A DNA stretch of 63,857 nucleotides, filler included, from Lenisia limosa (taxonomy: Eukaryota > Protista > Breviatea): NCBI GenBank assembly GCA_001655205.1. It is 11 parts of 11 records of this genome, joined end to end, with 100 filler letters (N's around TTAATTAATTAA, not from the genome) between each part and the next. Parts side by side here need not be neighbours in the genome. Positions count along the whole stretch, not along the records: positions 33,165 to 37,963 come from LPNZ01003856.1; 10 more parts are not named here. One strand, written 5' to 3'. The notes beneath the pieces were generated by a model. The model did no database searches. It was not told the DNA's origin and worked only from the letters and a program-made list of their open reading frames with translations. This document shows positions 3,001-38,639 of the stretch, piece by piece. Position 1 is the first letter of the stretch; every line of letters begins with the position of its first letter. The position numbers were made by a program, and so were the translations under genes.

Positions 3001-4162
3001 GCAAAGGTATAATCGGGGTGCCCCAATCCCTAAATATTGACCAAATTAGTGTTTCTCAAGTGTTTTTTTTACCTATAATTCATCTTTTTTTGAAAAAAGC
3101 GCACAACCAAACCTGGCAACAATGCCAAGGCTGCTCTCNNNNNNNNNNNNNNNNNNNNNNNNNNNNNNNNNNNNNNNNNNNNNNNNNNNNNNNNNNNNNN
3201 NNNNNNNNNNNNNNNNNNNNNNNNNNNNNNNNNNNNNNNNNNNNNNNNNNGACTCCATTTCTGCTGAGCTCTTGTCCTTATCCTCGCGGCATTCATTTGA
3301 GCGTTTAGAACATGCAAAAGAAGCAGGTTGGTACCCAATCGTTATTTTTTAATTATGGGGTGGTGCAATATTATGCATACAATATTATATGATATTTCAT
3401 AGATAATCTGGTATTTGGTTTCAAAGTTAATAAACAAGAATGCAAAGTTGGCACTGAACCACAGCCGCTATCGCCCCAAAACCCAGCTGTTTCTGGACCA
3501 AATGTAATGACCTCTCCGTCTAAACCCCATTTTGATGAGCCAAGTCAAGTTTTTGGGGTTTCTATTTGTATATTCTACCTGCATCTTAATGTTGACTTTC
3601 CTCTAGGAAGACTCTCTGCCAGCGCCCTTTCAAGAAATGCTCCGACGGTCACAAAGTAGGTGCAATGTTGTCTCCTCCACCAGGTTGATATTATTGACCG
3701 ATATTGATGTTGTTGACATCTTCATCTATATTTCCCTTCCTCTCCTCACTCTTTTAAATTTCCTTTTAGCACCCACGACTGCCATAGCCACTAAGTTGCT
3801 TTGCTTTCTTTCGGATGAAGAGCGAAAGTGAGGCTTGAGGGGTGCAATATTAAAGACCCTTTGCGTTTACTGTATTGTATGATATATCATATTCTGTTTG
3901 TTCTTTTATATATCGATATTAAATATATTATATCCTCAATTCTCCGATACTGCTTATAGTTTCAAATCCTGTCTTATTTTTGGGTGTGCCAATATATTCA
4001 ACAATGTGTACCCCCGCCTCTATTTGTGAGTCTGCTTATCACATCTCCCTTCTACCCTCCCTCCCAGCATCCCTCTCTCTGGCTAGCGTTTGCCTCGGTA
4101 ATATATCAGATTCCTCTATGAAGAGCTACAGCAGCTACAGAAGTCTCCCTGATCCTATGTAA
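87..4162 (+). CDS. Multi-exon hypothetical protein, 5'-partial, with a very long acidic (Glu/Asp/Ser-rich) low-complexity exon
   Basis: ORF 34..2778 is bounded by an acceptor (ctttag|87) and a donor (2774|gtaagc). Downstream exons give TPNIRSVGFEKAFITPPDTPM..., DSISAELLSLSS... and ...ATKLLCFLSDEER/VCLGNISDSS...PDPM* (stop about 4162). No recognisable domain. Confidence 0.7.
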
Positions 4163-4299
4163 ATAAAGGTGTATTTTTTTTGTCTATGTTTCTATTCTAT
4201 ATGTTCTTGACTGATTTCATATTAATTGTGTGATATATTTTCTTTTCTTATTTTAGGAGACACTTTTTTTACGGATTAAGTGCGGGAATGAAACGCCGT

Positions 4300-6821
4300 T
4301 TAGGACTCATTGTAGTTTGGTCCGCCTCCTCCCTCAGGAACCCTCCACTTGATATTCTGTTCAGGGTCCTTGATGTCGCAAGTTTTGCAGTGCAGGCAGT
4401 TGCTTGAGTTGATACGGAGCTAAACGTGACCACAACACTGAAGGCATACCTTATTCCCCCCATCCTCTTCAGGGGGGTATTCAAACACGTGGGCAGGGCA
4501 ATAGAATTGCTTGAGGGGATATAATAAGCTGGTTTAGATCTACCTCTGGTCCTCCGTATCGCTGAATGTTGTTTTTAATATCACCCGGGCGGCTAACCAC
4601 AATGTGTGACGGTTGATTTTCATCTGCGAGGGTGAGAAAACAAATTCATACTGTGTCCAGTGGCAGAATAGGGGAGATTAGAAAGGCGGTCGAAAACGGC
4701 ATTTTGAAGATCAGTTGGAACCTGGAGGGGGTGTATGATTTGATATAATGTACATCATACGTTTTGAGCATCTATTTGGTAATTATTTTTGATTGAGGTG
4801 TGTATTTGATGTGGAAAATGAGACCAATTATCTCGTGGGCATGGTGAACTAAAACGTCAATGTTAGAATATCCTTACATTGATCCCATATCACAATATGC
4901 TTGCAATGGACCCATCAAATTTGTGCGAATAAAATGAATATTTGAAGACATCTTCAGTTCGTCGTACATGTGTGATGACTTCACCCAAATGATAACATGG
5001 AAATAACATTTTTTCAAAGTTGGGATTGTCTGCTGAAAAAGACCCAGTTTCTTGAAACACGCCAAATAATGATCTTGCAGCAAGGATTCCTGAAGTAATA
5101 GCATTGTGAGTTCCCTGAATTACAAAAAAAGACCCTGACCTTTATTTTGAAATTGTCAATAAAGCCTGCAGAATCCCCAATTAGCATTCCACCAGGAAAA
5201 GTCAATGTTGGTAACCTGTGAACGTAAATAGCAAAAATATCACCCACGATTGAATTCCGCCTTTTGCAATTGCCCTTGCACCATACTCAATTCTCTCTCC
5301 TTCCTTGAATATCCGTTCAAAATCGAAAATCTTGTTATAGGTTTAGAAAACTGTTCCATATTTGGAATTGTTTTGGAATAAATGCACCTTGTACTCTTGT
5401 AAACGATCAGCAGTGTTTGAAAAGCTAAAAGTGACATCATCTTTCAGTTACCTTTTGAAGTCCATGTCACAAATCATACCGATTGCTAGCTTGTCATTGG
5501 GTAAATCATAAACAAACATTCCTCCTTTAATGTTATTTTTTGTCATTCGCTCACTGTCTTTGAATCTACCGTCGTGGTATACAAAACATCGCGCCGGGTC
5601 CCTCATACCTTCAGGCAGCTGCCAAACCTACAATGTTGATTTTCTCTCAAGACCGTCAACATCTTCATTAAATTCTTTCCAGACCTCTTTAACACCCAAA
5701 GCATATTTCTGTGGGCAACTTGGTTCTAATTGAAACTTCTCAACAACATCCTGGTGAATAAAGCAAGGAGGAATAAAGAGAATCACAAACCGATGCAACA
5801 CTACCTCGAGCGCCCTCCGCAACAATGGTCACTTTTGAGTTGATCGCAATTCCCTTTTCGAAGTCATTCTGGAACGTAAGTACACTTTTGTTTTTCGGAT
5901 CTTAAATCTTACTGATAACGTGCCATCTTTATTTATACCAGTGTCCTTGGTAATAACTCCTTTGACAGTGTCTTGGTCATATATGACTTCGCTACATGGA
6001 AAAGATGGAACCACATCAATGTCCAGTTCATTTGCTTTTGTACCAAGGTACTGTACCAACTGGGATAAACTGCAAGGTTAGAAAAGTATCAATATTCAAA
6101 CATCCACTCATTTGCAACAGCTTGCCGAAAACCCCCCAAACGATCCAGTATATGACCTGACACTATTTGGAATTGCCCATCGGTTTCTCTCAGGTTTGAT
6201 CATGAACATTGAAAGGAAGTCATCTGTAACTTGGCGTAATGGTGGTGCGTCCTGTCAGAATGAATTTCATTTTTTGTTGAACTTACTGGGTCTGTTCGCC
6301 ATTCAGGTAAGAGAACATCTAAAGAGACAGGATCAAGGCATAAGCCTGAAAAACTATGACCACCTGAGTAGCATAAGCCAATTGTCATTTGTTGAAAGTT
6401 GAAAATGAAAACTTTCATACCAATTTCATCTGATTTCTCAAGAACGCAAACAGCCACATTTTCTTCAAATCTTCTGGCCAGGGTTTTCAGTTCAATGGCT
6501 ACAGTGTATTATTTAATAGAAATGAAGCGAGTAAACTATTTACTAACCAGCAGCAAGGCCAGCAGGTCCAGCACCAATGATTGAGACATCAAAGTCAAGT
6601 TCTTCTCTTGTTTCACAAGTGCTGCCAAAGTACCTTGATGGTACCTACCCAGATTTAATGATTCATAGTCACTTTGAAGTAAATTTAATATGATGAGTTA
6701 CTTGAAAACATAGTAGTTTATGTAATTGACGAAACAAAAGATATTTACCCACAGTCACAGAACTGGTTTTCATCAAGTGGGGGAAGCACTCATTTGTGAG
6801 AGTTCGCCTTAGAGCAAGCAT
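4300..6821 (-). CDS. ETFDH: Electron transfer flavoprotein-ubiquinone oxidoreductase (ETF-QO), complete, many short introns
   Basis: Spliced translation gives an MLALRR N-terminus, FAD motif [108 protein letters not shown], and the C-terminal [4Fe-4S] motif [36 protein letters not shown]. Confidence 0.96.
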
Positions 6822-11399: not shown

Positions 11400-13350
11400 T
11401 TGAATTCTCGACATTTATTCCCTCCACTCCTCATTGCTTGCACCAGTATTTGCACCAAAGAGACACCCACAAAGCCCACATTTTCATTTCAGGCTTGCGA
11501 GGGTTGAGGAGATACACGGTTGTAACGTCATCAACATTGGTGTCAAACGACTACATGCTATGTCAAACGACTGGATGTTATTGCCTCACTTTGCCCCCAT
11601 ACAAGCCCTACTGAATACTGAGGTCTTTCAAAAAAGGCAATTATTTATATGATATCTAGATTTCTAATGTATATTATTTCTCTTGTTTCAAAAAAAAAGA
11701 TATATTATGTATACTTATGTATATAGGGGGTAACTACGGCTAACATTGCAATCGAGTTCCACACCTACCTGTCCAATAATTCGGTTCATGTCATCTAGAC
11801 GAAGGGAACCGGTTTTCTGGGGTGCCTGGCTGACAAGATGCTGGACTTTTGGAAGAAGATGCTCCGCACTGGATACCTGGGGGAGGGGGTCAACAAAGCA
11901 AATTTAGGTCAGTCTTGAAAAACAACTCCTGACAAGAGATGCCCCTCCCCCCACATGAGTGATATGATGGACATGGATTGGTGATGTGTGTGGCTTTGTG
12001 TTGACGGTGTGGACCTTGGTATCCGCTACCACGTGGTCAAAATAGCGCTGCACGGCTGCCTGTGGGGGGGGGGGGGGGGGNNNNNNNNNNNNNNNNNNNN
12101 NNNNNNNNNNNNNNNNNNNNNNNNNNNNNNNNNNNNNNNNNNNNNNNNNNNNNNNNNNNNNNNNNNNNNNNNNNNNNNNNNNNNNNNNNNNNNNNNNNNN
12201 NNNNNNNNNNNNNNNNNNNNNNNNNNNNNNNNNNNNNNNNNNNNNNNNNNNNNNNNNNNNNNNNNNNNNNNNNNNNNNNNNNNNNNNNNNNNNNNNNNNN
12301 NNNNNNNNNNNGAGGATTTGAAAACAAACAAATAACAAAAGCCACAGCCTAGAAGGTAATTTCTCTTTTGATGGGCAAAATTCCGAGAAAAAAAAACAGG
12401 GACAAGCTTAAAGTAACCAAAGAGGGGAAAGAGAAGAAAGAAGATGAAAACGGGTGTGTGANNNNNNNNNNNNNNNNNNNNNNNNNNNNNNNNNNNNNNN
12501 NNNNNNNNNNNNNNNNNNNNNNNNNNNNNNNNNNNNNNNNNNNNNNNNNNNNNNNNNNNNNNNNNNNNNNNNNNNNNNNNNNNNNNNNNNNNNNNNNNNN
12601 NNNNNNNGGAATGAAGAAACACAATGCATACCGGCTGAATGTCAATTTCACCGTTGCCGTCCCTGGAGAATCCAACCAACTGCTGAGTTAGAGAAAAATC
12701 CAACAATAAACTCAATTCTCTGATACATCTTCATAGAGACAGTTCCGTGCTTCCCAACACGTATGAATATTAAGCGTGCCACCCCCCTGCCTTAATGTTA
12801 ATAACAGACGCGGCGTTGAGGTGCGAGAGGCTTCGGTGCATAGCCTGCGATGTCATTATGAGCACCTCAAAAGGATAGTGTTCACAATGGTTACAATGTC
12901 ACCACAATCGGATCAAAAAAAGTTGGTTAAAAAAGAGCTCAACACTTCAATATAATGAGATCAGCCCTGCTGGATATCCAGACTGACTTGCTGTAATACA
13001 GTACATTCCCCAATATCATCGTACCCCCCATCACTGTACCCAGGCCTGACCTTCATTGTAGTTGGAAGGATACCCCCGGGATATGGCTTGTCAAGGAAGG
13101 CCCTGTCAGCATCTTCCAACTGCAGAAAGGCATCTTGCTCGGCCGCTGGGTCTGGGGGGGGGTGTTACAGAAGTCGTTGTTGCCCTTGCTCTCTCATGGA
13201 GAATCCTGGTTGGTTTCTTGGACACCCTTCATCAGCCACAGTAACGTCACCACGCTTGCTTACCTTTTTGTGGGAACGCTGCCAGCTTCTCATAGGCAAC
13301 ATTACGATCCATAGAAAGACGGCTGCTTTGGAAGAGGTCTCCAATTCCTG
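11400..13350 (-). CDS. Fragmented multi-exon hypothetical gene
   Basis: GT-AG-bounded coding-like exons: PDPAAEQDAFLQLEDADRAFLDKPYPGG, VSSAEHLLPKVQHLVSQAPQKTGSLRLDDMNRIIGQ, FFERPQYSVGLVWGK|SFDTNVDDVTTVYLLNPRKPE. Interrupted by gaps. Confidence 0.4.
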
Positions 13351-13755: not shown

Positions 13756-16700
13756 ATGGTGTTGATGAACCTATTTCTGCTCTTGGTGCTTTACGGAGCC
13801 CTTGGAAGTACACCAGTTAAGTGAGTAGGGTCAGATAAATGTGGGGGNNNNNNNNNNNNNNNNNNNNNNNNNNNNNNNNNNNNNNNNNNNNNNNNNNNNN
13901 NNNNNNNNNNNNNNNNNNNNNNNNNNNNNNNNNNNNNNNNNNNNNNNNNNNNNNNNNNNNNNNNNNNNNNNNNNNNNNNNNNNNNNNNNNNNNNNNNNNN
14001 NNNNNNNNNNNNNNNNNNNNGTTTATTATCTCTTTTAATTTTTCAAAGCTATATTACATACTCATATAATTACTATATTATAATATCTCTAGTATATAAC
14101 ATATATATACTGTACATAATATGTACAGATATAATTTCGATATAATCGCATAATATGGCCTGAGCTTTGGTTGCTTTGTTTTCACTATTCAACCAACAAA
14201 GGCTTTTTCTCTGATATTCTATTTTCACCCCCCCTGCAGCATGGATACTACAGGAGATGCCCAGATCTACCTCACCCAAGCCACCCATCCTCGTCACGCT
14301 GTTGCCTTGGTGGGTGGTGTTTCGTTCGTTCCCTCTTGTTAATTGTAGCAAGTTCATCTGTTCTTCCGACCCCCCATCATCCCCCATCACAGTTTTTCAT
14401 CGAATGCTGTTGATACTTGAGGTTTTTTGAGCACACTCATCAGACACTTCTTGTACATATCATATGTATACTACCCATTGCACATATATGACCCGACAGT
14501 AAATATGATAACATATCGTGTATTGGAGTCAATAACCTTAATACTTCCCATTCACCTTGTAGGAACAATTTGATGCGTTCAAAATCGGTTTGGTGGGTGC
14601 TTCCTTTGTGGAACTATGATCAGCTCTTATCTGATCTTTTTGTCTCATATTCCTGGAATAGTTATTCAGATTATGGCTTTGCTGACTTCATAGAGATGAA
14701 CTGCCTGGTTGGTGCTCCACCTGTATCAGAAGGAGTTTCGGTCACCGTCAATTCACGGATTTATAACTCGGATAACGTTGTCGCCGGTATTACTGTTACA
14801 GTGAGGGGCTGGCCTCAGTTGGTAAACAAGCGATTGAACAGTAATTGTCAATAAGACATTGGTGGTAGCGAAGAATCGTATCCTCACCTTTTCTCTTCTC
14901 ATTTGACGTCTTCTACCACTAATGATCCCAGGGTGCCTGTCCGGCCGGAACTGAACTGTTAGTTCCGACAACCTCCGTCACGTGCTCCTATTCCGCCGGC
15001 TGGGTGGACGGGCCAGTTTGCCTTCCCGGTATGGGGTTAATGGGGGATTGAGATCTTTGATATATTGATATGATTAGAATATCATGGGTTTCACTTTGGT
15101 TCGAGAAAAGACTAAAATTTGACAACAAAAACTCAGAAAATATTGATATTTTTTGGGCATTTTCGGAGGCCGAGAAATGTGAAACTCTCATGCATCACAA
15201 AGTATTTTTTGATACATTTATTGCCTAAAATAATTGACCGTAGTAACCTGCGACAATTCTGTGCTCGCTGATGTAACATTGACGAACTGCACTGGAGGTA
15301 AGCATATCCAATATTTGGTGTTCTCAAATGGGATGAAGCAGTATGGGTGTACTCAAATGAGATGAAGCAGTATTTGACTTTTTCTCCAGCCACCACAGCA
15401 TATGGAGAAGTCTGTGCCACCGAATGTGCTGCAGGTACACCTTCAGGTAAGTGGCACTACCACTTTCACCACTTTCATCACACACAGGTCATCCATTTCA
15501 TTTTCCCTGTCTCTTTTACATCCTTGTCATTTGGAAATGCCTTTACGTTATAGGAACGGCCACAGCCAAATGCGGGCAAAATGGATGGGTTACTGACTTT
15601 TGCTGCGGTTGGAGGGGTCAATGATATCATGGGCTTCATTTTGATTAGCCCTTATCGTATCGATATTAAGGGTTTATTTTCGGAAGCTATGGAGCCGTCT
15701 TATTGATGCAGGTGGATCCCTGACGACTTGTGGTACTTTCAATAGCTATAATCTTGGAGTGGTAGGAGGTTTTCTTGAAGAACTATTAAGACTCTTGAAA
15801 TCCGTTTCAAATGCCGAAATTCACGTTTCCAGCCAGGGTCATCAGACAACAAGTACGATGGTGCCAGTAACGACCTCGAGGCCCTCTGGGGAAGTGACAT
15901 CAAATACGTTGCGAAGAGCTACAGGGGCTTCTGCAGTATTTCTGCTGGTTTGCAGGGTATTGTTTCTTGGTGATTAATGAGACGAGACAATCATGACTCA
16001 CCTCATATTCCTCATTATCCTCACCTCATATTCCTCATTATTTTACACTTTGATTTTTTTTACTAACCACTTAGATTCCCAAATCCAATGCATTGGCTCT
16101 AACAGCCAAGAGCAGGTGGGGGGGGGGGGGTCCNNNNNNNNNNNNNNNNNNNNNNNNNNNNNNNNNNNNNNNNNNNNNNNNNNNNNNNNNNNNNNNNNNN
16201 NNNNNNNTTAAACAGGTTTTTAGATTATCTCAACTTTCACTGGGTTCGCCAAGCCAAACCTAAACAATTTATGATGTTTAGATTGTCGGACAAACCAGCA
16301 ACCCTGTATCTGTGATAGCGTCCTATAGCGGCCTCCTAAATGCTCCTATTGACTACTTTAAAGGAGGACATTACTTCTTTGGCCTATTGAGTATGAGGAT
16401 ATCCATGCGCCTTTCGGCTTTCTTTGAATCGTGGCTTCTAGTCACTTTTGGTTTGGCTATATTCGTGTCTTAGAAACGAGTTCCGTGGTGAATAGAGTGT
16501 TTGCTCTTTGCTTGCGTTTGTTTCGGAGTTCTTTTTTCAAAAGTTGAAATTTGCTCAAAATCACAACCCTCAGCCGAAGGCAAGGCCTATCTTTGGGGAC
16601 AGAACTCATATGGACAGCTCATGAGGTCGGACAAAACCTCCTCCAACATCCCGACCTTGGTGGGCTTTTGTTGGCTTGTTCCACATATTCGCCACTGACA

Positions 16701-31970: not shown

Positions 31971-33259
31971 CTGATCAGACGTCGTTATTATTGTATTACC
32001 TAATTACCTATATATGTGTTTTTATGATTAGCTTCAGAAAAGACCATTTGAGAGAATCCAGCTATTTATATAGAGAGTACTGTTATTCCGAAATAGTTTT
32101 GACTGAAAATATAAATGGTTGTTTTATATTATAAACACAATTTAATAGGCTTATTTATTAATAATCCAATTATATATTATTAACGTTAAGGTGTATTTAA
32201 ACTTTTTTGTTCATGTTTTTTTAATAAACAAAACTTAGAGGACTGTGATAAACTGAACTGCGTGGTGCTAGCTTAATATCCTGTCACCAAAATGACAAGA
32301 TTTGTCAGCATTGTCTTCCTGTTCCTTCTAGGTTAGCTATCTCGAAGTACTCTTGCCCAGTAACTGTTTTTATTAGGAATTGGTGGACTTCACGGACTTA
32401 AACTTCGAGGAGAGGACTTTGGTACTAAGTATGATGTCGTCCAAGTTAAGAGAGTAGGTCTTTTGCGTATTTTCATTTTATAATTCTTATAAAAATTCGA
32501 TTAGATAGGAAATTGAGACCACCCTTTTGAGATTTCTCTCTTTTTGTCCAATCACAACTTTAAAGATCAATGTGTGAATCATTTCCGCGTACCTGGCGTT
32601 ATGAAACTTGTTTCATATCAAGCATGTTATATTTGATTTGGATTTCTTTTGTTTTAGAAATATCCTCGGTGATAATTCTCCAAATCTCGAATTTTCTATT
32701 TCACCGACATTCTATTATTACTCTCACTTTCACACTGATTCAATCAAAATTGGGACTCCCTTTTTTGCCTATTATCAACGGAAAAAGCCATCTTTAAACA
32801 TCTCCATGGCTTTCTCCATGACTAGCAAAAGAAGAATACAGCAAGGTGACAACCTTAGGGTCGTGTTGTGCGTGATGACGGACCGCATGGAGTATCCGAG
32901 TCTGGCCTGACTTTCACTGCCTTCAACAAAGACATTACTCTTGATCTTGAGCGTTATGATGACGTACGAGGGGCTGGACAGGGTGAAGAACCGTGTACTT
33001 TATATATTACATTTGTTTTGTTGTTTTTAATTCGCTGGCTGCTTTAGTGCTTAACTTCGCACACNNNNNNNNNNNNNNNNNNNNNNNNNNNNNNNNNNNN
33101 NNNNNNNNTTAATTAATTAANNNNNNNNNNNNNNNNNNNNNNNNNNNNNNNNNNNNNNNNNNNNTCGCCCCCCCCCCCCAAAATTCAAATTATTCGGTTC
33201 GTGATTAGTAACTTTACTCCGATACATTTCATTGAAAGTTCCTTTGTTTTACCCCACAG

Positions 33260-36200
33260 GATGAGGGCCGAATTAAGCTGTCTATCAGATGGGTGTCACA
33301 AAGCACTGGTGAAGACCTTGACCCTCAGAATAGTGGGGCGCTATAAATCGGGCATGTTTCTTAAATGCTTCAGCTGAGTTGATTTGGGGGTTGTATTTTG
33401 TGTGTTGCCAGCCAACATAATTAAATTTGTGCTTTTTGTTCAATATATATTATGTATATTGTCCAATTTCACCCCCCCCCCCAGTTGGAGTGTCTCAAGC
33501 CGAGCAGNNNNNNNNNNNNNNNNNNNNNNNNNNNNNNNNNNNNNNNNNNNNNNNNNNNNNNNNNNNNNNNNNNNNNAACGAGCCCATCGCCCTCGAGGCC
33601 ATTTTGGCGGTCACGTGCGCTGATGTGGGTCTTGGGAGGGGGGGGGTTAAATACCTGCTTCTATGGTTGACATTGATCATTTCAGTGTTTCTGTCTCTTT
33701 CTGTAGATGTTTCTCATGTACAGTTCAACCGACGGATCGTGATGTTCCTAGTTTCAATAGAAACTTACTGCAAAAAAATGACATTTCAGTGCGGACAAGA
33801 CGGCCACCTTGCCTACGAATGCCGTTCAGCCGGCAAGTCTTATGACGTCATGGAGGTGGGGGGATATCTATCGTCTATGATATCTTATAATGTGATAGAG
33901 ATGGGGCTCAAGTTGTATGAATGCATATACTGGATAGATTTGTCTTGATCTATTTATATTCCATTTATATCTTTAATTACAAAACTGTTTTTGAACGACG
34001 TCTTAATAGTGAGACGTCAGATTGCGTCCAATGTTCTTCATTCCACTTTCCCTGCCATTATGACGAATATCGATCGGTTTTCACGCGTTTCAGGGAGCCA
34101 GTTTAACTGAGGAGGAAGTAACCCAGGTGTTTGCCATGGCTAAAAAGGTGTGTTTGCCTCCGCTGATTGGAGCTGGGTAACTAGTTCTTTTTTAAGATAA
34201 AATAAACTTCTTAATACTGTAAATAAAATCTAGGGATGCAATAATACATAGCAATCCCATGAAACAAAATCACCAAACATTTGCGGCACCGCTGCTATAA
34301 TCTCTTTAGTTCTTTTTTTTTTGTTCTTTTTTCAACCCCCCCCCCACCCTCGTGACCGTTCCAGGCCGGATGTCTGAAGCACTTCAAGGAGCGTTTGGAG
34401 TCAATTCGAANNNNNNNNNNNNNNNNNNNNNNNNNNNNNNNNNNNNNNNNNNNNNNNGGTGGGGGTGGTAGATGAAAGATGCTAGCAGAGTTGAATTCGA
34501 TTTTTTTCTTTGTTTCAAACCTGAAATTACGGGACTATCAAGGCATAGTCGCGATAACATGAGTTTTTATTTTTGTTTCATAAATTTTAGATTCCAATTT
34601 TATCCCCCCCCCCCCAGCTTTAACAATCATCGACACGTATGTGGCACAAAAAATGGAGAAGAGGGAAGCGAAAGAAGACAAGAGAAGGGCAAAACAGGAG
34701 AAGAAGGACAGGAAGGAACGCAAGCGCAGACACAAGGAGGTCTGTTCGACTCTTTAGCTCTTGATGTCAGATAATGCATACATTTGCCTGAATCTGTCTT
34801 GTCGGCAGAGATTCCTTTTATTATTTCTCATTTCTACATATTTTCTCCTTCTACTCCTGAATATGGGCCAACTCTCACCTTGTAGGGCGTCTTCACCCCT
34901 TCACCGTCCCCACCCCGTCGCTAGTAAGCTGCCTAGTAGAAATAGTGCATTGTGTTTAGGGATTCACTTCGGTTGGAAAAAACACTGAATTTGTCGATAA
35001 ATCCTCGAAAACTATCGATATCTTCCCGATTTTTTCGAAGTGAAGCCCTAATTGTGATACGACTACTATACCTATTATCTCTGAGAATGTGATGATGTGA
35101 ACGGCTTCGGCCAGATATAGCCTTGTTTTGTTTCTCATCTCGACATACTCCCTTTTGACCCTTCAAAACCGTCGTGTCCACTTGAATTAATATGAAACTT
35201 AAGCCAATACAAGATCGATTTGTAGACGTTTTCACCCAAGCATTTTTTTCACTTGAGCCTTTTTTCACCTAAGCCTTTTTTCACCAACAAGCCGTCGCAG
35301 CCGCTCACCACGCCGCCGGTCCCCTATGAGAAGGTCTAGTCCGATGTATCGCCGACACTCTCCTGACAACAGGAGGTGGGCATACTGAGGATTGCTACTT
35401 GTCTTGTTATTATCTATTTGTCACTTTTGAGAATGATGTGAGTTTTGTTTTGTTGTCAGCAAATTATTGTTGAAGAGCTCTCCACACACACACACACACA
35501 CACAACTCCCTACCGCCCGCTCAATTATATTTAAATGCAGTAAATCATCATCAATGTATAGGTCATATCATATATATATGTGTGTTGTCGAGTATTCTTT
35601 TATACTTTAGACGGTCACGCTCCCCAGTACAAAGACGGCGCTACAGGTCCCCCTCAAGTAGATGGGATGCAGTCCCCACGTTTTTGTTGTTTGTTTTTTT
35701 TCAATCCTCATGTGTTCCCCCTTTTTCATACATTTTCCATATTAATTCTTACGTTTCACCATAGTCTTTATTCAACTTCCCTTTTCCCCCCCCGCTCTAT
35801 AATTAACCGAAGCTCTACGGACCTCCTATCTTGGGCTTCATTTCGGTTTTAAAAAAAGACAGAATCCTCGATAAATCTCAATAAATATCGATATTTTCCA
35901 GGTCTTTTCCAGACCAGAGTGACTTATATCTTGGTTGATTTCTGCGCCTTCAACGAGGTACTTCATATCTCACCACTCCAGGCTCTCCCTCGCCGGTTCG
36001 TCGTAAGGCCCCATCCAGTAGGCTGGCTAAATGAGGGGGTATAAGCGGAGAATGTAACACACAAAATTTGAGAAACACACAAGTGTTAAAAACAACACGC
36101 TGATCATACTTGTTTCACTTCAAAAGACTCCGTCTCACTTCAAAAGACAGTTAATCATGTTTTTCTTTTTACATATTGTACAAACCCACTCCCCTTCCCT

Positions 36201-37790
36201 CACTTTCTCTAACTCCCCAGACTCCCCTCGTCGCCAGCGCCGCTCACCGTCAAGTAAGCTTTGAGGCCGAAACCTGAGGCAAATGATTGGGTGAATTAAT
36301 ATTATACGATAATCCAATATTTCTTAAGCGTAATGATGTGGACGGCTTCAACCAAATGCAACCTTATTTTTTTTCCTCATCTCTGCATAACAATACAATT
36401 GGCCTTCTTTCTGACTTCCAGGCTCACCATCCCCTCGTAAAGGCCGCAGAGCCCCTTCAGGTTGGCCATAATGGGGTACATGGTTTTGCCTCTAATGAAT
36501 GGGTAACGTTGGTGGCCAAACTGAATATGCTTTTCAATATTACATCTGCGAGGCTTTTTTTTTCAATGGGGGGGGGGGCTGTTTTTCATTTTATTTATAT
36601 ATCGTTGATACATACATATGAAGGGGTACCTGTTCCATAAGAGCAGCAGTGTGACTAGTCCAGGATCACCACCCCGANNNNNNNNNNNNNNNNNNNNNNN
36701 NNNNNNNNNNNNNNNNNNNNNNNNNNNNNNNNNNNNNNNNNNNNNNNNNNNNNNNNNNNNNNNNNNNNNNNNNNNNNNNNNNNNNNNNNNNNNNNNNNNG
36801 TCTTCTCCATTGATGGTGCCATGTTATGACAGAGGGATTCCCTGCGGTCCGAAAAAGACCGGTGAAACATCGATTTTTTTCGAGGATCTATCAAAAACAT
36901 TCAGTTTTTTATAAATATTATTATGAGTATCAGTATCCCCATGATCTGCTTTTGATTTTGCATTTCCCCGTTTCTGACTTTGCCAGGCTCCCCTCCGGCA
37001 CGCAGAGGTCGCAGGTCCCCCTCAGGTATCTCTCTCTCTCTTTCTCTGGACAATATCTTATAATATTGATAATTTTTTATTTTGTTTAATATTATGATGT
37101 TCCTCAGAACTCCTTTTCTCAGCCTGGTACAAGGTTAACAGCAGGACAAGACCCTGTAAATATCGATATTTATTGGGTCTTTTTTGGAACCATCACGTAT
37201 TTGGTATTTACCAACAAGCTAACCACCCCAGGCTCCCCACCTCGCAGAAACCGCAGATCGCCCTCAGGTATCTTTTGTAAAAAGAAATAAGAAATGCTAT
37301 CATATCATATATATCATATCTACATTATTAATAATCTAGAGAAATTAATAAATGCATAGGGGAACCCATCATAGGGCTTCACTTCGGTTCGATTGTATTC
37401 TCATTTTCACATTTATGCCATTATTTTGACTGATTTCAGACTCGCCCCCTCGCAGACGGAGAAAGCCTTCAAGTTTGCTTGGGGCTTTGTGAGGCTTTTG
37501 ATAGAATCCTCTGGGCATTTTCTCACCTGGAGGGCGCAGGAAGTGCTTACCATATGGTATTATATATAAAATCCCTCCAGGGATAGAATACCATCTGTGA
37601 TATATTAAAATTAATACGTAGAGAGACCTTAAACCAAAAATTGGCATATTAAAAGCATTATCCCTTGTAAGCGTGATAGTGTGGATTGCTTTGGCCTTTT
37701 TTTTTTCTCATTTCCCAGATGATATGATATTGTACTCTCACTCACACCATGTAGGATCACCCCGTCGCCGCAACAGTCGTTCCCCTTCAA
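33260..37790 (+). CDS. ZCCHC17: ZCCHC17/pNO40-like S1 + CCHC zinc-knuckle protein with a Lys-rich segment and a long SR/SP tail encoded by microexons; partial at both ends
   Basis: DEGRIKLSIRWVSQSTGEDLDPQN matches the S1 C-terminus (...SLSMK.V.Q.TG.DLDP.N). EPIALEAILAVTCAD|CGQDGHLAYECRS forms a CX2CX4HX4C knuckle preceded by I.LEA.L, as in pNO40. Then KEDKRRAKQEKKDRKERKRRHKE and phase-consistent RS exons. Confidence 0.8.
34959..35048. mobile_element. MITE family A copy, intronic, TA on both sides
   Basis: ta|gggattcacttcggttgg...tcgataaatcctcgaaaactatcgat...cgaagtgaagccc|ta. Confidence 0.8.
35833..35925. mobile_element. MITE family A copy, degenerate, intronic
   Basis: gggcttcatttcggtttt...ctcgataaatc...ggtctttt. 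Confidence 0.6.
36310..36382 (+). repeat. Family C repeat, intronic
   Basis: ataatccaatatttcttaagcgtaatgatgtggacggcttcaaccaaatgcaaccttattttttttcctcatctc. Other copies at about 24597, 31383, 35085, 37660, 42452, 48397 and 60091. Confidence 0.7.
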
Positions 37791-38639
37791 GTATGCATCA
37801 GAAAAATACTATTCATATTGTGAAATTAACCATAACATGAAAAAGAGAGTCACAGAAAATTGAATTAACGACAATAATTCGAGTCAACGACAAAATTTTG
37901 GACCTTGAGCATATAATATTATACTATGTATAGTATTGTCTCTTTCTTATACTTTACTCTCAGNNNNNNNNNNNNNNNNNNNNNNNNNNNNNNNNNNNNN
38001 NNNNNNNTTAATTAATTAANNNNNNNNNNNNNNNNNNNNNNNNNNNNNNNNNNNNNNNNNNNNGGACTAAATCTTGCTACTGTTGTCATTTTGCGATGTT
38101 CTTAGATTTGGAATTAAGTTTGCCGAAGTTTCATAGCTTTTGCGATTTTTTTTTTGATTTGGGACCTAAATGTTCCAGAAAGTTCGATACTTGCCTAATT
38201 GGGAAAACAGGGTTGAAAAAGTCGAAAAACGGTCATTTCTCATCATATGACCCTTTAAAACTTCTAATGACGTCAGAAACAGAAAGCCAGAACCCCAAAA
38301 CCCTTAAAATGGTCGAATCGGATTTTGCCTCAGAATCAAAAAAAGTAAATATATATAGGTGGGGGTGCAAAACCTCGACACTGTTTTTTGTTTCGTGTTC
38401 ATGTGGGATGTTTGATGTTCGTGCGACAACTAATTCTGTTCTTTTCGTAATGCAATCTTAGATTAACATTTGTAAAAATATTTCGTGATTAATACAATAA
38501 TATGTAAAGGCTTGTTTTAATTTCTCTTTAAGATGATCAAATCGATATTTCATCGAATGTAATGGTCGGTTTTAGGGCTGATGTTTATTATCGGAACTAT
38601 TGTACTACAGATATAAGGTCCTCATAATTGTCACAACAT

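Follow-up and report, generated by a model that had tools for sequence, protein, structure and literature searches.

A microexon array encoding an Arg/Ser/Pro-rich, RS-like tail in a ZCCHC17-type gene of Lenisia limosa

Introduction

Runs of consecutive short exons flanked on both sides by introns of one phase (symmetric exons) have been described in several gene families, and a gene of the breviate protist Lenisia limosa is compared with them here. It was found in a stretch of 63,857 nucleotides, filler included (the window, 11 parts of 11 records of the GenBank assembly GCA_001655205.1 joined end to end), of which positions 33,165 to 37,963 come from LPNZ01003856.1. The piece examined, window positions 33260–37790, holds the end of an S1 domain, a CCHC zinc knuckle and a series of microexons of 33–39 nt, each of which specifies one repeat of a tail rich in arginine, serine and proline (R/S/P).

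Runs of symmetric exons with one shared phase that encode disordered repeats typically come from internal tandem duplication (PMC3632108), and the duplication of PEVK exons has been described (PMC6469411). The arrays of titin PEVK, collagen, tropoelastin and ameloblastin are similar to the L. limosa array in that they consist of short homologous exons of one phase with one low-complexity repeat each (PMC3632108), but the units here are much shorter (33–39 nt), belong to a nuclear RS-like protein and not to a structural or elastic one, and are separated by introns without similarity. Schistosome micro-exon genes (MEGs) have symmetric exons of 3–81 bp with lengths that are multiples of three (PMC10526429), and runs of such exons are what they share with the present gene. 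Their products are, however, secreted and fast-evolving, most of their coding sequence lies in symmetric microexons, their introns reach 5 kb and exon skipping is documented for them, whereas the L. limosa gene encodes a nuclear-type RNA-binding protein with an S1 domain instead of a signal peptide at its N-terminus, has array introns of 168–403 nt and keeps only 25% of its coding sequence (CDS) in the array. The 5′ mini-exons of troponin T (TNNT3 exons 4–8) are comparable only in phase symmetry (PMC2447309); their combinatorial use has been demonstrated, whereas here it is arithmetically possible only, and none was observed.

Two protein families are relevant to the product. Classical SR (serine/arginine) proteins have one or two N-terminal RRMs, whereas an S1 domain and a CCHC knuckle are found here, and no RRM was recognized (segments beyond the S1 domain and the knuckle were judged by eye). 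Manley and Krainer reportedly defined the RS domain in 2010 as at least 50 amino acids (aa) with more than 40% RS/SR content. To our knowledge, one large exon or a small number of them encodes each known RS-like domain, as opposed to one exon per repeat. Motifs of the types SPxRR and RRSPS fit SRPK/CLK/CDK-type phosphorylation sites. These motifs, in repeated form, and the R/S/P composition are shared between the tail described here and proteins of the SRRM1/SRRM2 type, although the L. limosa protein has no RRM or PWI domain.

Human ZCCHC17, a protein of 241 aa, has a Lys/Ser/Asp-rich end. It contains an S1 domain, a CCHC knuckle and two nuclear localisation signals (NLS), and binds pinin, SRrp37 and SRSF1/2 (PMC10055234). 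The L. limosa protein resembles ZCCHC17/pNO40 in its N-terminal S1 domain, single CCHC knuckle and basic NLS-like segment. It differs in that the human protein is short and lacks an Arg/Ser/Pro repeat tail, whereas 212 RS-like residues are added here on 14 small exons. A full-text literature search for RS domains built of duplicated short exons yielded no description of such a case.

Results

Nine consecutive symmetric microexons

The initial annotation had proposed eight AG/GT-bounded microexons, each complete one with a length that is a multiple of 3 and with phase-1 introns on both sides. This was confirmed for all eight (E10–E17), the exon interrupted by a gap included. In a script check of the piece, seven of them are complete (36, 33, 39, 39, 36, 33 and 36 nt), and each yields the proposed peptide in frame +2, with two leading bases and one trailing base. 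The 32-kb, N-free contig NODE_274 of ERZ3820729 (ENA), referred to below as L001, continues the array beyond the piece. E10–E18 follow one another as nine phase 1-1 exons (36, 33, 39, 36, 39, 36, 33, 36 and 36 nt), which comprise 324 of 1311 coding nt. The exons from the last part of the S1 domain onward are as follows (window coordinates unless marked L001).

33260..33332, + strand: E1, last part of the S1 domain (DEGRIKLSIRW...); RNA contig 380–452, Pfam S1 on the spliced domain
33485..33624, + strand: E2, 92 nt, spans gap 33508–33576 and ends with the first two knuckle Cys; DNA run X1 and L001, RNA contig requires 92 nt
33790..33855, + strand: E3, remainder of the CCHC knuckle (CX2CX4HX4C over E2/E3); RNA contig 545–610, PF00098
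34094..34147, + strand: E4, 54 nt; collinear RNA contig, open frame
34365..34458, + strand: E5, 58 nt, spans gap 34411–34457 (true length 11 nt); exact length accounting
34618..34739, + strand: E6, 122 nt, Lys/Glu/Arg-rich NLS-like segment; RNA contig 723–844, translation
34886..34923, + strand: E7, 38 nt, phase 0 to 2, R/S/P-rich tail begins; RNA contig requires 38 nt between E6 and E8
35292..35375, + strand: E8, 84 nt, phase 2-2, about three SP..RR units without an internal intron; RNA contig 883–966
35611..35657, + strand: E9, 47 nt, phase 2 to 1, 3′ half is repeat unit SPVQRRRYRSPS; RNA contig 967–1013, repeat family D2
35982..36017, + strand: microexon E10, 36 nt, phase 1-1, SPSPVRRKAPS; AG/GT, RNA bin depth 2.65 = 11.8 × 36/160
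36221..36253, + strand: microexon E11, 33 nt, phase 1-1, SPRRQRRSPS; AG/GT, 288-nt RNA accounting
36422..36460, + strand: microexon E12, 39 nt, phase 1-1, SPSPRKGRRAPS; AG/GT, RNA bin depth
36664..36699 (end nominal; 36664–36677 read, 22 nt in the gap; L001 13092–13127), + strand: microexon E13, 36 nt, phase 1-1, SPPRRARRSPS; L001, 84-nt bridge of X1, RNA
36987..37025, + strand: microexon E14, 39 nt, phase 1-1, SPPARRGRRSPS; AG/GT, RNA
37232..37267, + strand: microexon E15, 36 nt, phase 1-1, SPPRRNRRSPS; AG/GT, RNA
37440..37472, + strand: microexon E16, 33 nt, phase 1-1, SPPRRRRKPS; AG/GT, RNA
37755..37790, + strand: microexon E17, 36 nt, phase 1-1, SPRRRNSRSPS; AG/GT, RNA
L001 14584–14619 (past the end of the piece), + strand: microexon E18, ninth unit, 36 nt, phase 1-1, SPPRRPVRSFS; RNA overhang
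L001 14926–14980: predicted E19, 55 nt, 5′ part is a repeat unit
L001 15169–15256: predicted E20, terminal exon with TAG

L001 was reached by a protein search with a stop-free E2/E3 reference, which led to the ENA open reading frame (ORF) call P0001. It is identical to the piece bar one poly-C length; the window, DNA run X1 and L001 may share source reads, and the closure of gaps described here is not an independent biological replication. Gap 36678–36799, whose closure had been called for at the outset, has a true length of 84 nt instead of 122, as found with an X1 contig bridging 36677 to 36800. After 36677, L001 carries 22 extra exon bases and then a GTGGGG donor, which gives the 36-nt in-frame exon SPPRRARRSPS. 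The RNA contig described below separately demands 36 nt for this exon, with 288 nt between 35657 and 37790 against 252 nt for the other seven exons. By the X1 contig and L001, gap 33508–33576 is 21 nt long and not 69, and gap 34411–34457 is 11 nt long and not 47. Past the piece, L001 adds the ninth unit, then the predicted 55-nt exon, and then the predicted terminal exon with TAG.

A single transcript joins the array to the S1 domain and the knuckle

Transcript evidence came from polyA run X2 of the same study, in the form of contigs from one small library. Of the eight RNA records at the locus, all except one are repeat transcripts; the remaining one is a spliced contig of 1432 nt (depth 11.8), collinear with all of the exons in genomic order. 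Its listed blocks (33259–33332, 33790–33853, 34092–34145, 34617–34737, 35292–35373 and 35609–35657) are each reproduced by the GT-AG model. The exons from 33260 to 37790 total 922 nt, so that the contig reaches 380 + 922 − 1 = 1301 and, with its overhang of 131 nt, exactly 1432. The first 30 nt of this overhang past 37790 are L001 14584–14613, that is, the next exon, E18, and the RNA depth per bin fits 11.8 × exon length/160 for individual microexons.

Because the spliced contig is collinear with the exons and its length agrees exactly with the model, the SP exons belong to the same mRNA as the S1/knuckle exons. They are transcribed, spliced and joined to them with every unit present. The proposed phase consistency of the upstream exons back to the knuckle also holds, with the frame open from ATG to TAG.

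The full model comprises 24 coding exons with a GT-AG intron at every junction, and its 1311 nt form a single open frame of 436 codons from the ATG at L001 8298 to the TAG at L001 15254–15256. Placement of the start and stop codons and of E19 and E20 follows frame, splice sites and composition, and the RNA contig covers them by length only. Across the gene, exon lengths vary from 27 to 122 nt (median 46 nt), with ~17 introns per kb CDS. The fragmentation extends beyond the tail over the entire gene (L001 8298–15256); the S1 domain alone is distributed over five exons of 27–74 nt.

Repeat units and composition of the tail

Each array exon encodes one x-SP(P)RRxRR(S)PS unit of 11–13 residues. 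E9 (3′ part) and E19 (5′ part) add one unit each, so that ten introns occupy the identical site in eleven units; each splits the codon next to SPS behind that codon's first base. E8 and E20 each contain two or three similar units without an intron. Outside the array, no such motif exons were found when both strands of 20.6 kb were scanned. Nucleotide identity among the central units is 56–81%, with E14/E15 closest (81%, also a BLAST match), E15/E16 next (76%) and the edge units lowest; the central units being most alike and the edges least, the pattern is as expected for a tandem array.

The invariant Ser and Pro codons use all synonyms (TCC, TCA, TCT and TCG; CCC, CCT and CCA), which argues for selection at the protein level, and synonymous sites between units look saturated. 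The final Ser codon, by comparison, is TCA in eight of the nine units and forms the −3 to −2 part of the donor, which points to a splice-donor constraint. Judged from these codons, the peptide and the splice sites are conserved, but not the DNA as such.

The tail as a whole (residues 225–436, 212 aa, E7–E20, 14 exons) contains 70 R, 51 S and 45 P (33, 24 and 21%, together 78%), with 31 SP dipeptides, 25 RS/SR dipeptides and 14 S/T-P-x-K/R sites, and its net charge in the unphosphorylated state is about +71. Its 25 RS/SR dipeptides span ~24% of the 212 aa, against the 40% of the classical RS domain threshold. By composition, then, the tail is RS-like or SR-related, and the protein does not belong to the classical SR proteins.

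Domains upstream of the tail

The ZCCHC17-type architecture noted upstream of the array in the initial annotation was recovered. The spliced 68-aa segment matches the S1 domain in Pfam (PF00575, 57.5 bits, E 1.8e-15), and a single CCHC zinc knuckle downstream of it, in a 29-aa segment across the E2/E3 junction, matches PF00098 (zf-CCHC) with 22.8 bits against a cut-off of 20.8. It is followed in E6 by a 40-aa basic stretch rich in Lys, Arg and Glu, which appears NLS-like. In a PDB search, the best single-domain match was 2cqo, “Nucleolar protein of 40 kDa”, which is the S1 domain of ZCCHC17 (52 bits); ribosomal protein bS1 outranks it overall solely by adding several domains. The predicted domain plan thus matches that of human ZCCHC17, with S1, CCHC and a basic NLS-like segment. 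When proteins were searched with the 173-aa stop-free reference (E2 + intron + E3), only the ORF call of the locus itself, P0001, was returned, and no orthologues; a metagenome scan with P0001 gave no relatives, and Rfam found no RNA family on the piece.

Introns and dispersed repeats

The introns between the microexons had been described as unrelated and filled with miniature inverted-repeat transposable elements (MITEs), and this description was upheld. After repeat masking, the array introns (168–403 nt) gave local alignment scores equal to those of shuffled controls (mean z 0.46; adjacent pairs 0.10). They have only dispersed repeats in common, and the same repeats occur outside the gene on L001. 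Two of these repeats were delimited in the piece.

34957..35053, no strand, intron E7/E8: TA-flanked MITE of ~95 nt with terminal inverted repeats; DNA word depth
36277..36384, no strand, most of intron E11/E12: second dispersed repeat (GTRATGATGTGGACGGCTTC...CTCATCTC); copy at L001 19347–19454, depth ~25,000

The terminal inverted repeats of the MITE are ~20 nt long (GGGMTTCACTTCGG ... CCGAAGTGAAGCCC), and related copies or fragments lie in five other tail introns and outside the gene. Its DNA word depth is ~100,000 against ~25–33 for single-copy DNA, and it is present in thousands of copies; it looks Stowaway/mariner-like. Copies on L001 were noted at 5936–6046, 12261–12350, 13228–13300 and 14843–14885, and some copies are transcribed in the polyA library. 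The second repeat has weaker copies in introns E7/E8 and E16/E17. An origin of the introns from the MITEs themselves was considered and rejected, since the MITEs cover parts of introns only and carry no splice sites.

Splice-site and sequence features

The 5′ splice sites of the gene are atypical: in the 23 introns (L001 8343–15168), +5 G is present in 18 and +4 G in 13, and GTGGGG-type donors are common instead of GTRAGT. Runs of poly-C or poly-G of 10–13 nt are frequent (window 33475–33484, 34335–34345, 34604–34615 and 36568–36578; L001 13129–13139 and 14555–14569), and several of them directly precede 3′ splice sites, where they replace the mixed pyrimidine tract. Gap 36678 contains such a run and gap 33508 lies ~25 nt from one; poly-C/G runs may have caused the assembly breaks. 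All three N-gaps are too long in the window, and all three interrupt coding exons. Further simple repeats include a 16-nt tandem repeat of 3.5 copies just upstream of the E8 acceptor (window 35229–35285) and a (CA)11 microsatellite in intron E8/E9 (window 35483–35504).

Neighbouring genes

Upstream on the minus strand of L001 (~3100–4360) lies a DEAD-box helicase gene (Helicase_C match on the ENA call; LHGQMSQ..R in ORF 4020–4355), which is apparently also split into short exons. Standard-code ORFs give only short, exon-like pieces for the neighbouring genes on L001. The ENA ORF calls on this contig (e.g., P0001, 10001–10606) read through TGA, and several are untranslatable in the standard code; these are prokaryote-style calls across introns and not genes.

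Discussion

The observations are probably best explained, taken together, if the locus is the 3′ half of one protein-coding gene in an intron-rich eukaryote, with an array that arose by exon duplication, constitutive splicing of all its units and an RS-like tail as its product. The array would have been generated long ago from one symmetric exon plus its intron, by tandem duplication or unequal crossing-over; the introns would then have diverged fully and been invaded by MITEs, while selection retained the peptide and the splice sites. Consecutive phase 1-1 exons and homology between exons, as in other duplication arrays of symmetric exons, were found; residual homology between introns was not, which is compatible with old age. 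Its loss is expected after an old duplication because the synonymous sites look saturated. The most economical origin of the array, and the most likely one, is that one symmetric exon was duplicated in tandem together with its intron long ago and that the introns later turned over completely. The duplication proposed in the initial annotation stands in so far as the exons are homologous and share one intron site, and we infer it from these features, no intron homology having survived.

Several points weigh against this account. With no intron homology left, the duplication is read from exons and intron positions alone. Constitutive inclusion is read from one assembled contig of one small library, and rare isoforms drop out of contigs. 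The bounds of E19 and E20 and the stop codon were predicted from frame and composition, and with an alternative acceptor, 19 nt upstream of E20, the protein would end in a non-RS sequence. The putative orthology with ZCCHC17 was assigned from domain architecture and one PDB match, without a reciprocal search.

The array could also have formed with no duplication of exon and intron, if a single repeat-encoding exon gained an intron at the same motif of each repeat, for example at a proto-splice site or by introner-like insertion carried by transposons. Array introns without detectable common ancestry would be a natural outcome of such parallel gain, but that loss of homology is expected under old duplication with saturated synonymous sites. 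Most array introns hold MITEs of very high genomic copy number, yet these fill only part of each intron and do not provide the splice sites. Introns would have had to insert ten times independently, each time at precisely one codon position, and only half of the junctions resemble the CAG/G proto-splice site, the others being CAA/ or CCA/. The intronless repeat units in E8 and E20 fit parallel gain, and the rival is kept alive by the extreme intron density of this hyper-fragmented gene (median exon 46 nt, ~17 introns per kb CDS), since intron gain may be active in the lineage. On balance, we regard it as unlikely.

A second alternative accepts the array and concerns its use: the nine symmetric units could be a combinatorial cassette, alternatively included in up to 512 in-frame isoforms that tune tail length, charge and phosphosite number. 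The arithmetic behind this idea, that any subset of the nine units can be skipped in frame, is sound. All nine are multiples of 3 and phase 1-1, and because upstream exons end in A or G, the junction codons start with A or G, never T; no skip makes a stop, and the codon formed at any such junction is a sense codon (S, N, R, M, G, D or V). Symmetric exons that are spliced alternatively have a tendency to encode disorder (PMC3632108). Precedents are known from troponin T, whose mini-exons belong to one phase class (PMC2447309), and from the schistosome MEGs (PMC10526429). The heterogeneous donor sites of the units would also suit alternative use, but donors in the rest of the gene are equally heterogeneous. 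The single RNA contig, moreover, runs unbroken through all units, and neither a skipping junction nor a loose end at an internal exon border was seen in any of the eight RNA records, which as contigs and not reads, at a depth of ~12, have low power. Only the all-inclusive transcript form was seen (one contig from one RNA run; assembled contigs drop rare variants). The combinatorial splicing suggested in the initial annotation thus found no support: there is no sign of splicing-based tuning, which is possible by arithmetic alone, and we consider such a cassette rather improbable. More doubtful again is its regulated form, in which cells would vary the number of SP..RR..SPS units to adjust how much charge and how many phosphosites a ZCCHC17-type factor in splicing or ribosome biogenesis carries, with possible feedback via SR-protein-binding exon sequence.

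That the array is an artefact, whether non-coding repeat DNA that forms the pattern by chance or an assembly in which two genes were fused, is scarcely credible: the window has three gaps, and the window, X1 and L001 possibly all derive from the same reads, but a spliced polyA contig links every exon in the order of the genome, the introns are GT-AG, the frame is open, and the motif scan (20.6 kb, both strands) found nothing similar elsewhere.

Under the preferred account of an old, duplicated and constitutively spliced array, all units would be included constitutively, as they are in the one mRNA seen, and the small exons would presumably be recognised by intron definition over introns of 168–403 nt. 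By analogy with known RS-like domains, the tail may serve as a phosphorylatable, SRRM-like module for interaction and localisation. Human ZCCHC17 makes SR-type contacts in trans, with SRSF1/2, SRrp37 and pinin; the tail would provide such contacts in cis.

The gene structure is unusual but reveals no new mechanism. As a clean natural example, it shows how an RS-like module, disordered and phosphorylatable, would have grown by one short symmetric exon at a time, and it would bring RS-type domains under the known link that ties tandem exon duplication to phase symmetry and protein disorder. Vertebrate exons of 33–39 nt usually require dedicated enhancers; in L. limosa, nine to eleven consecutive exons of this size are faithfully recognised, which makes the gene a potential test case for microexons under intron definition. 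An SR-type tail carried in cis by a protein whose putative human orthologue binds SR proteins in trans would support a splicing-related role of the ZCCHC17 family.

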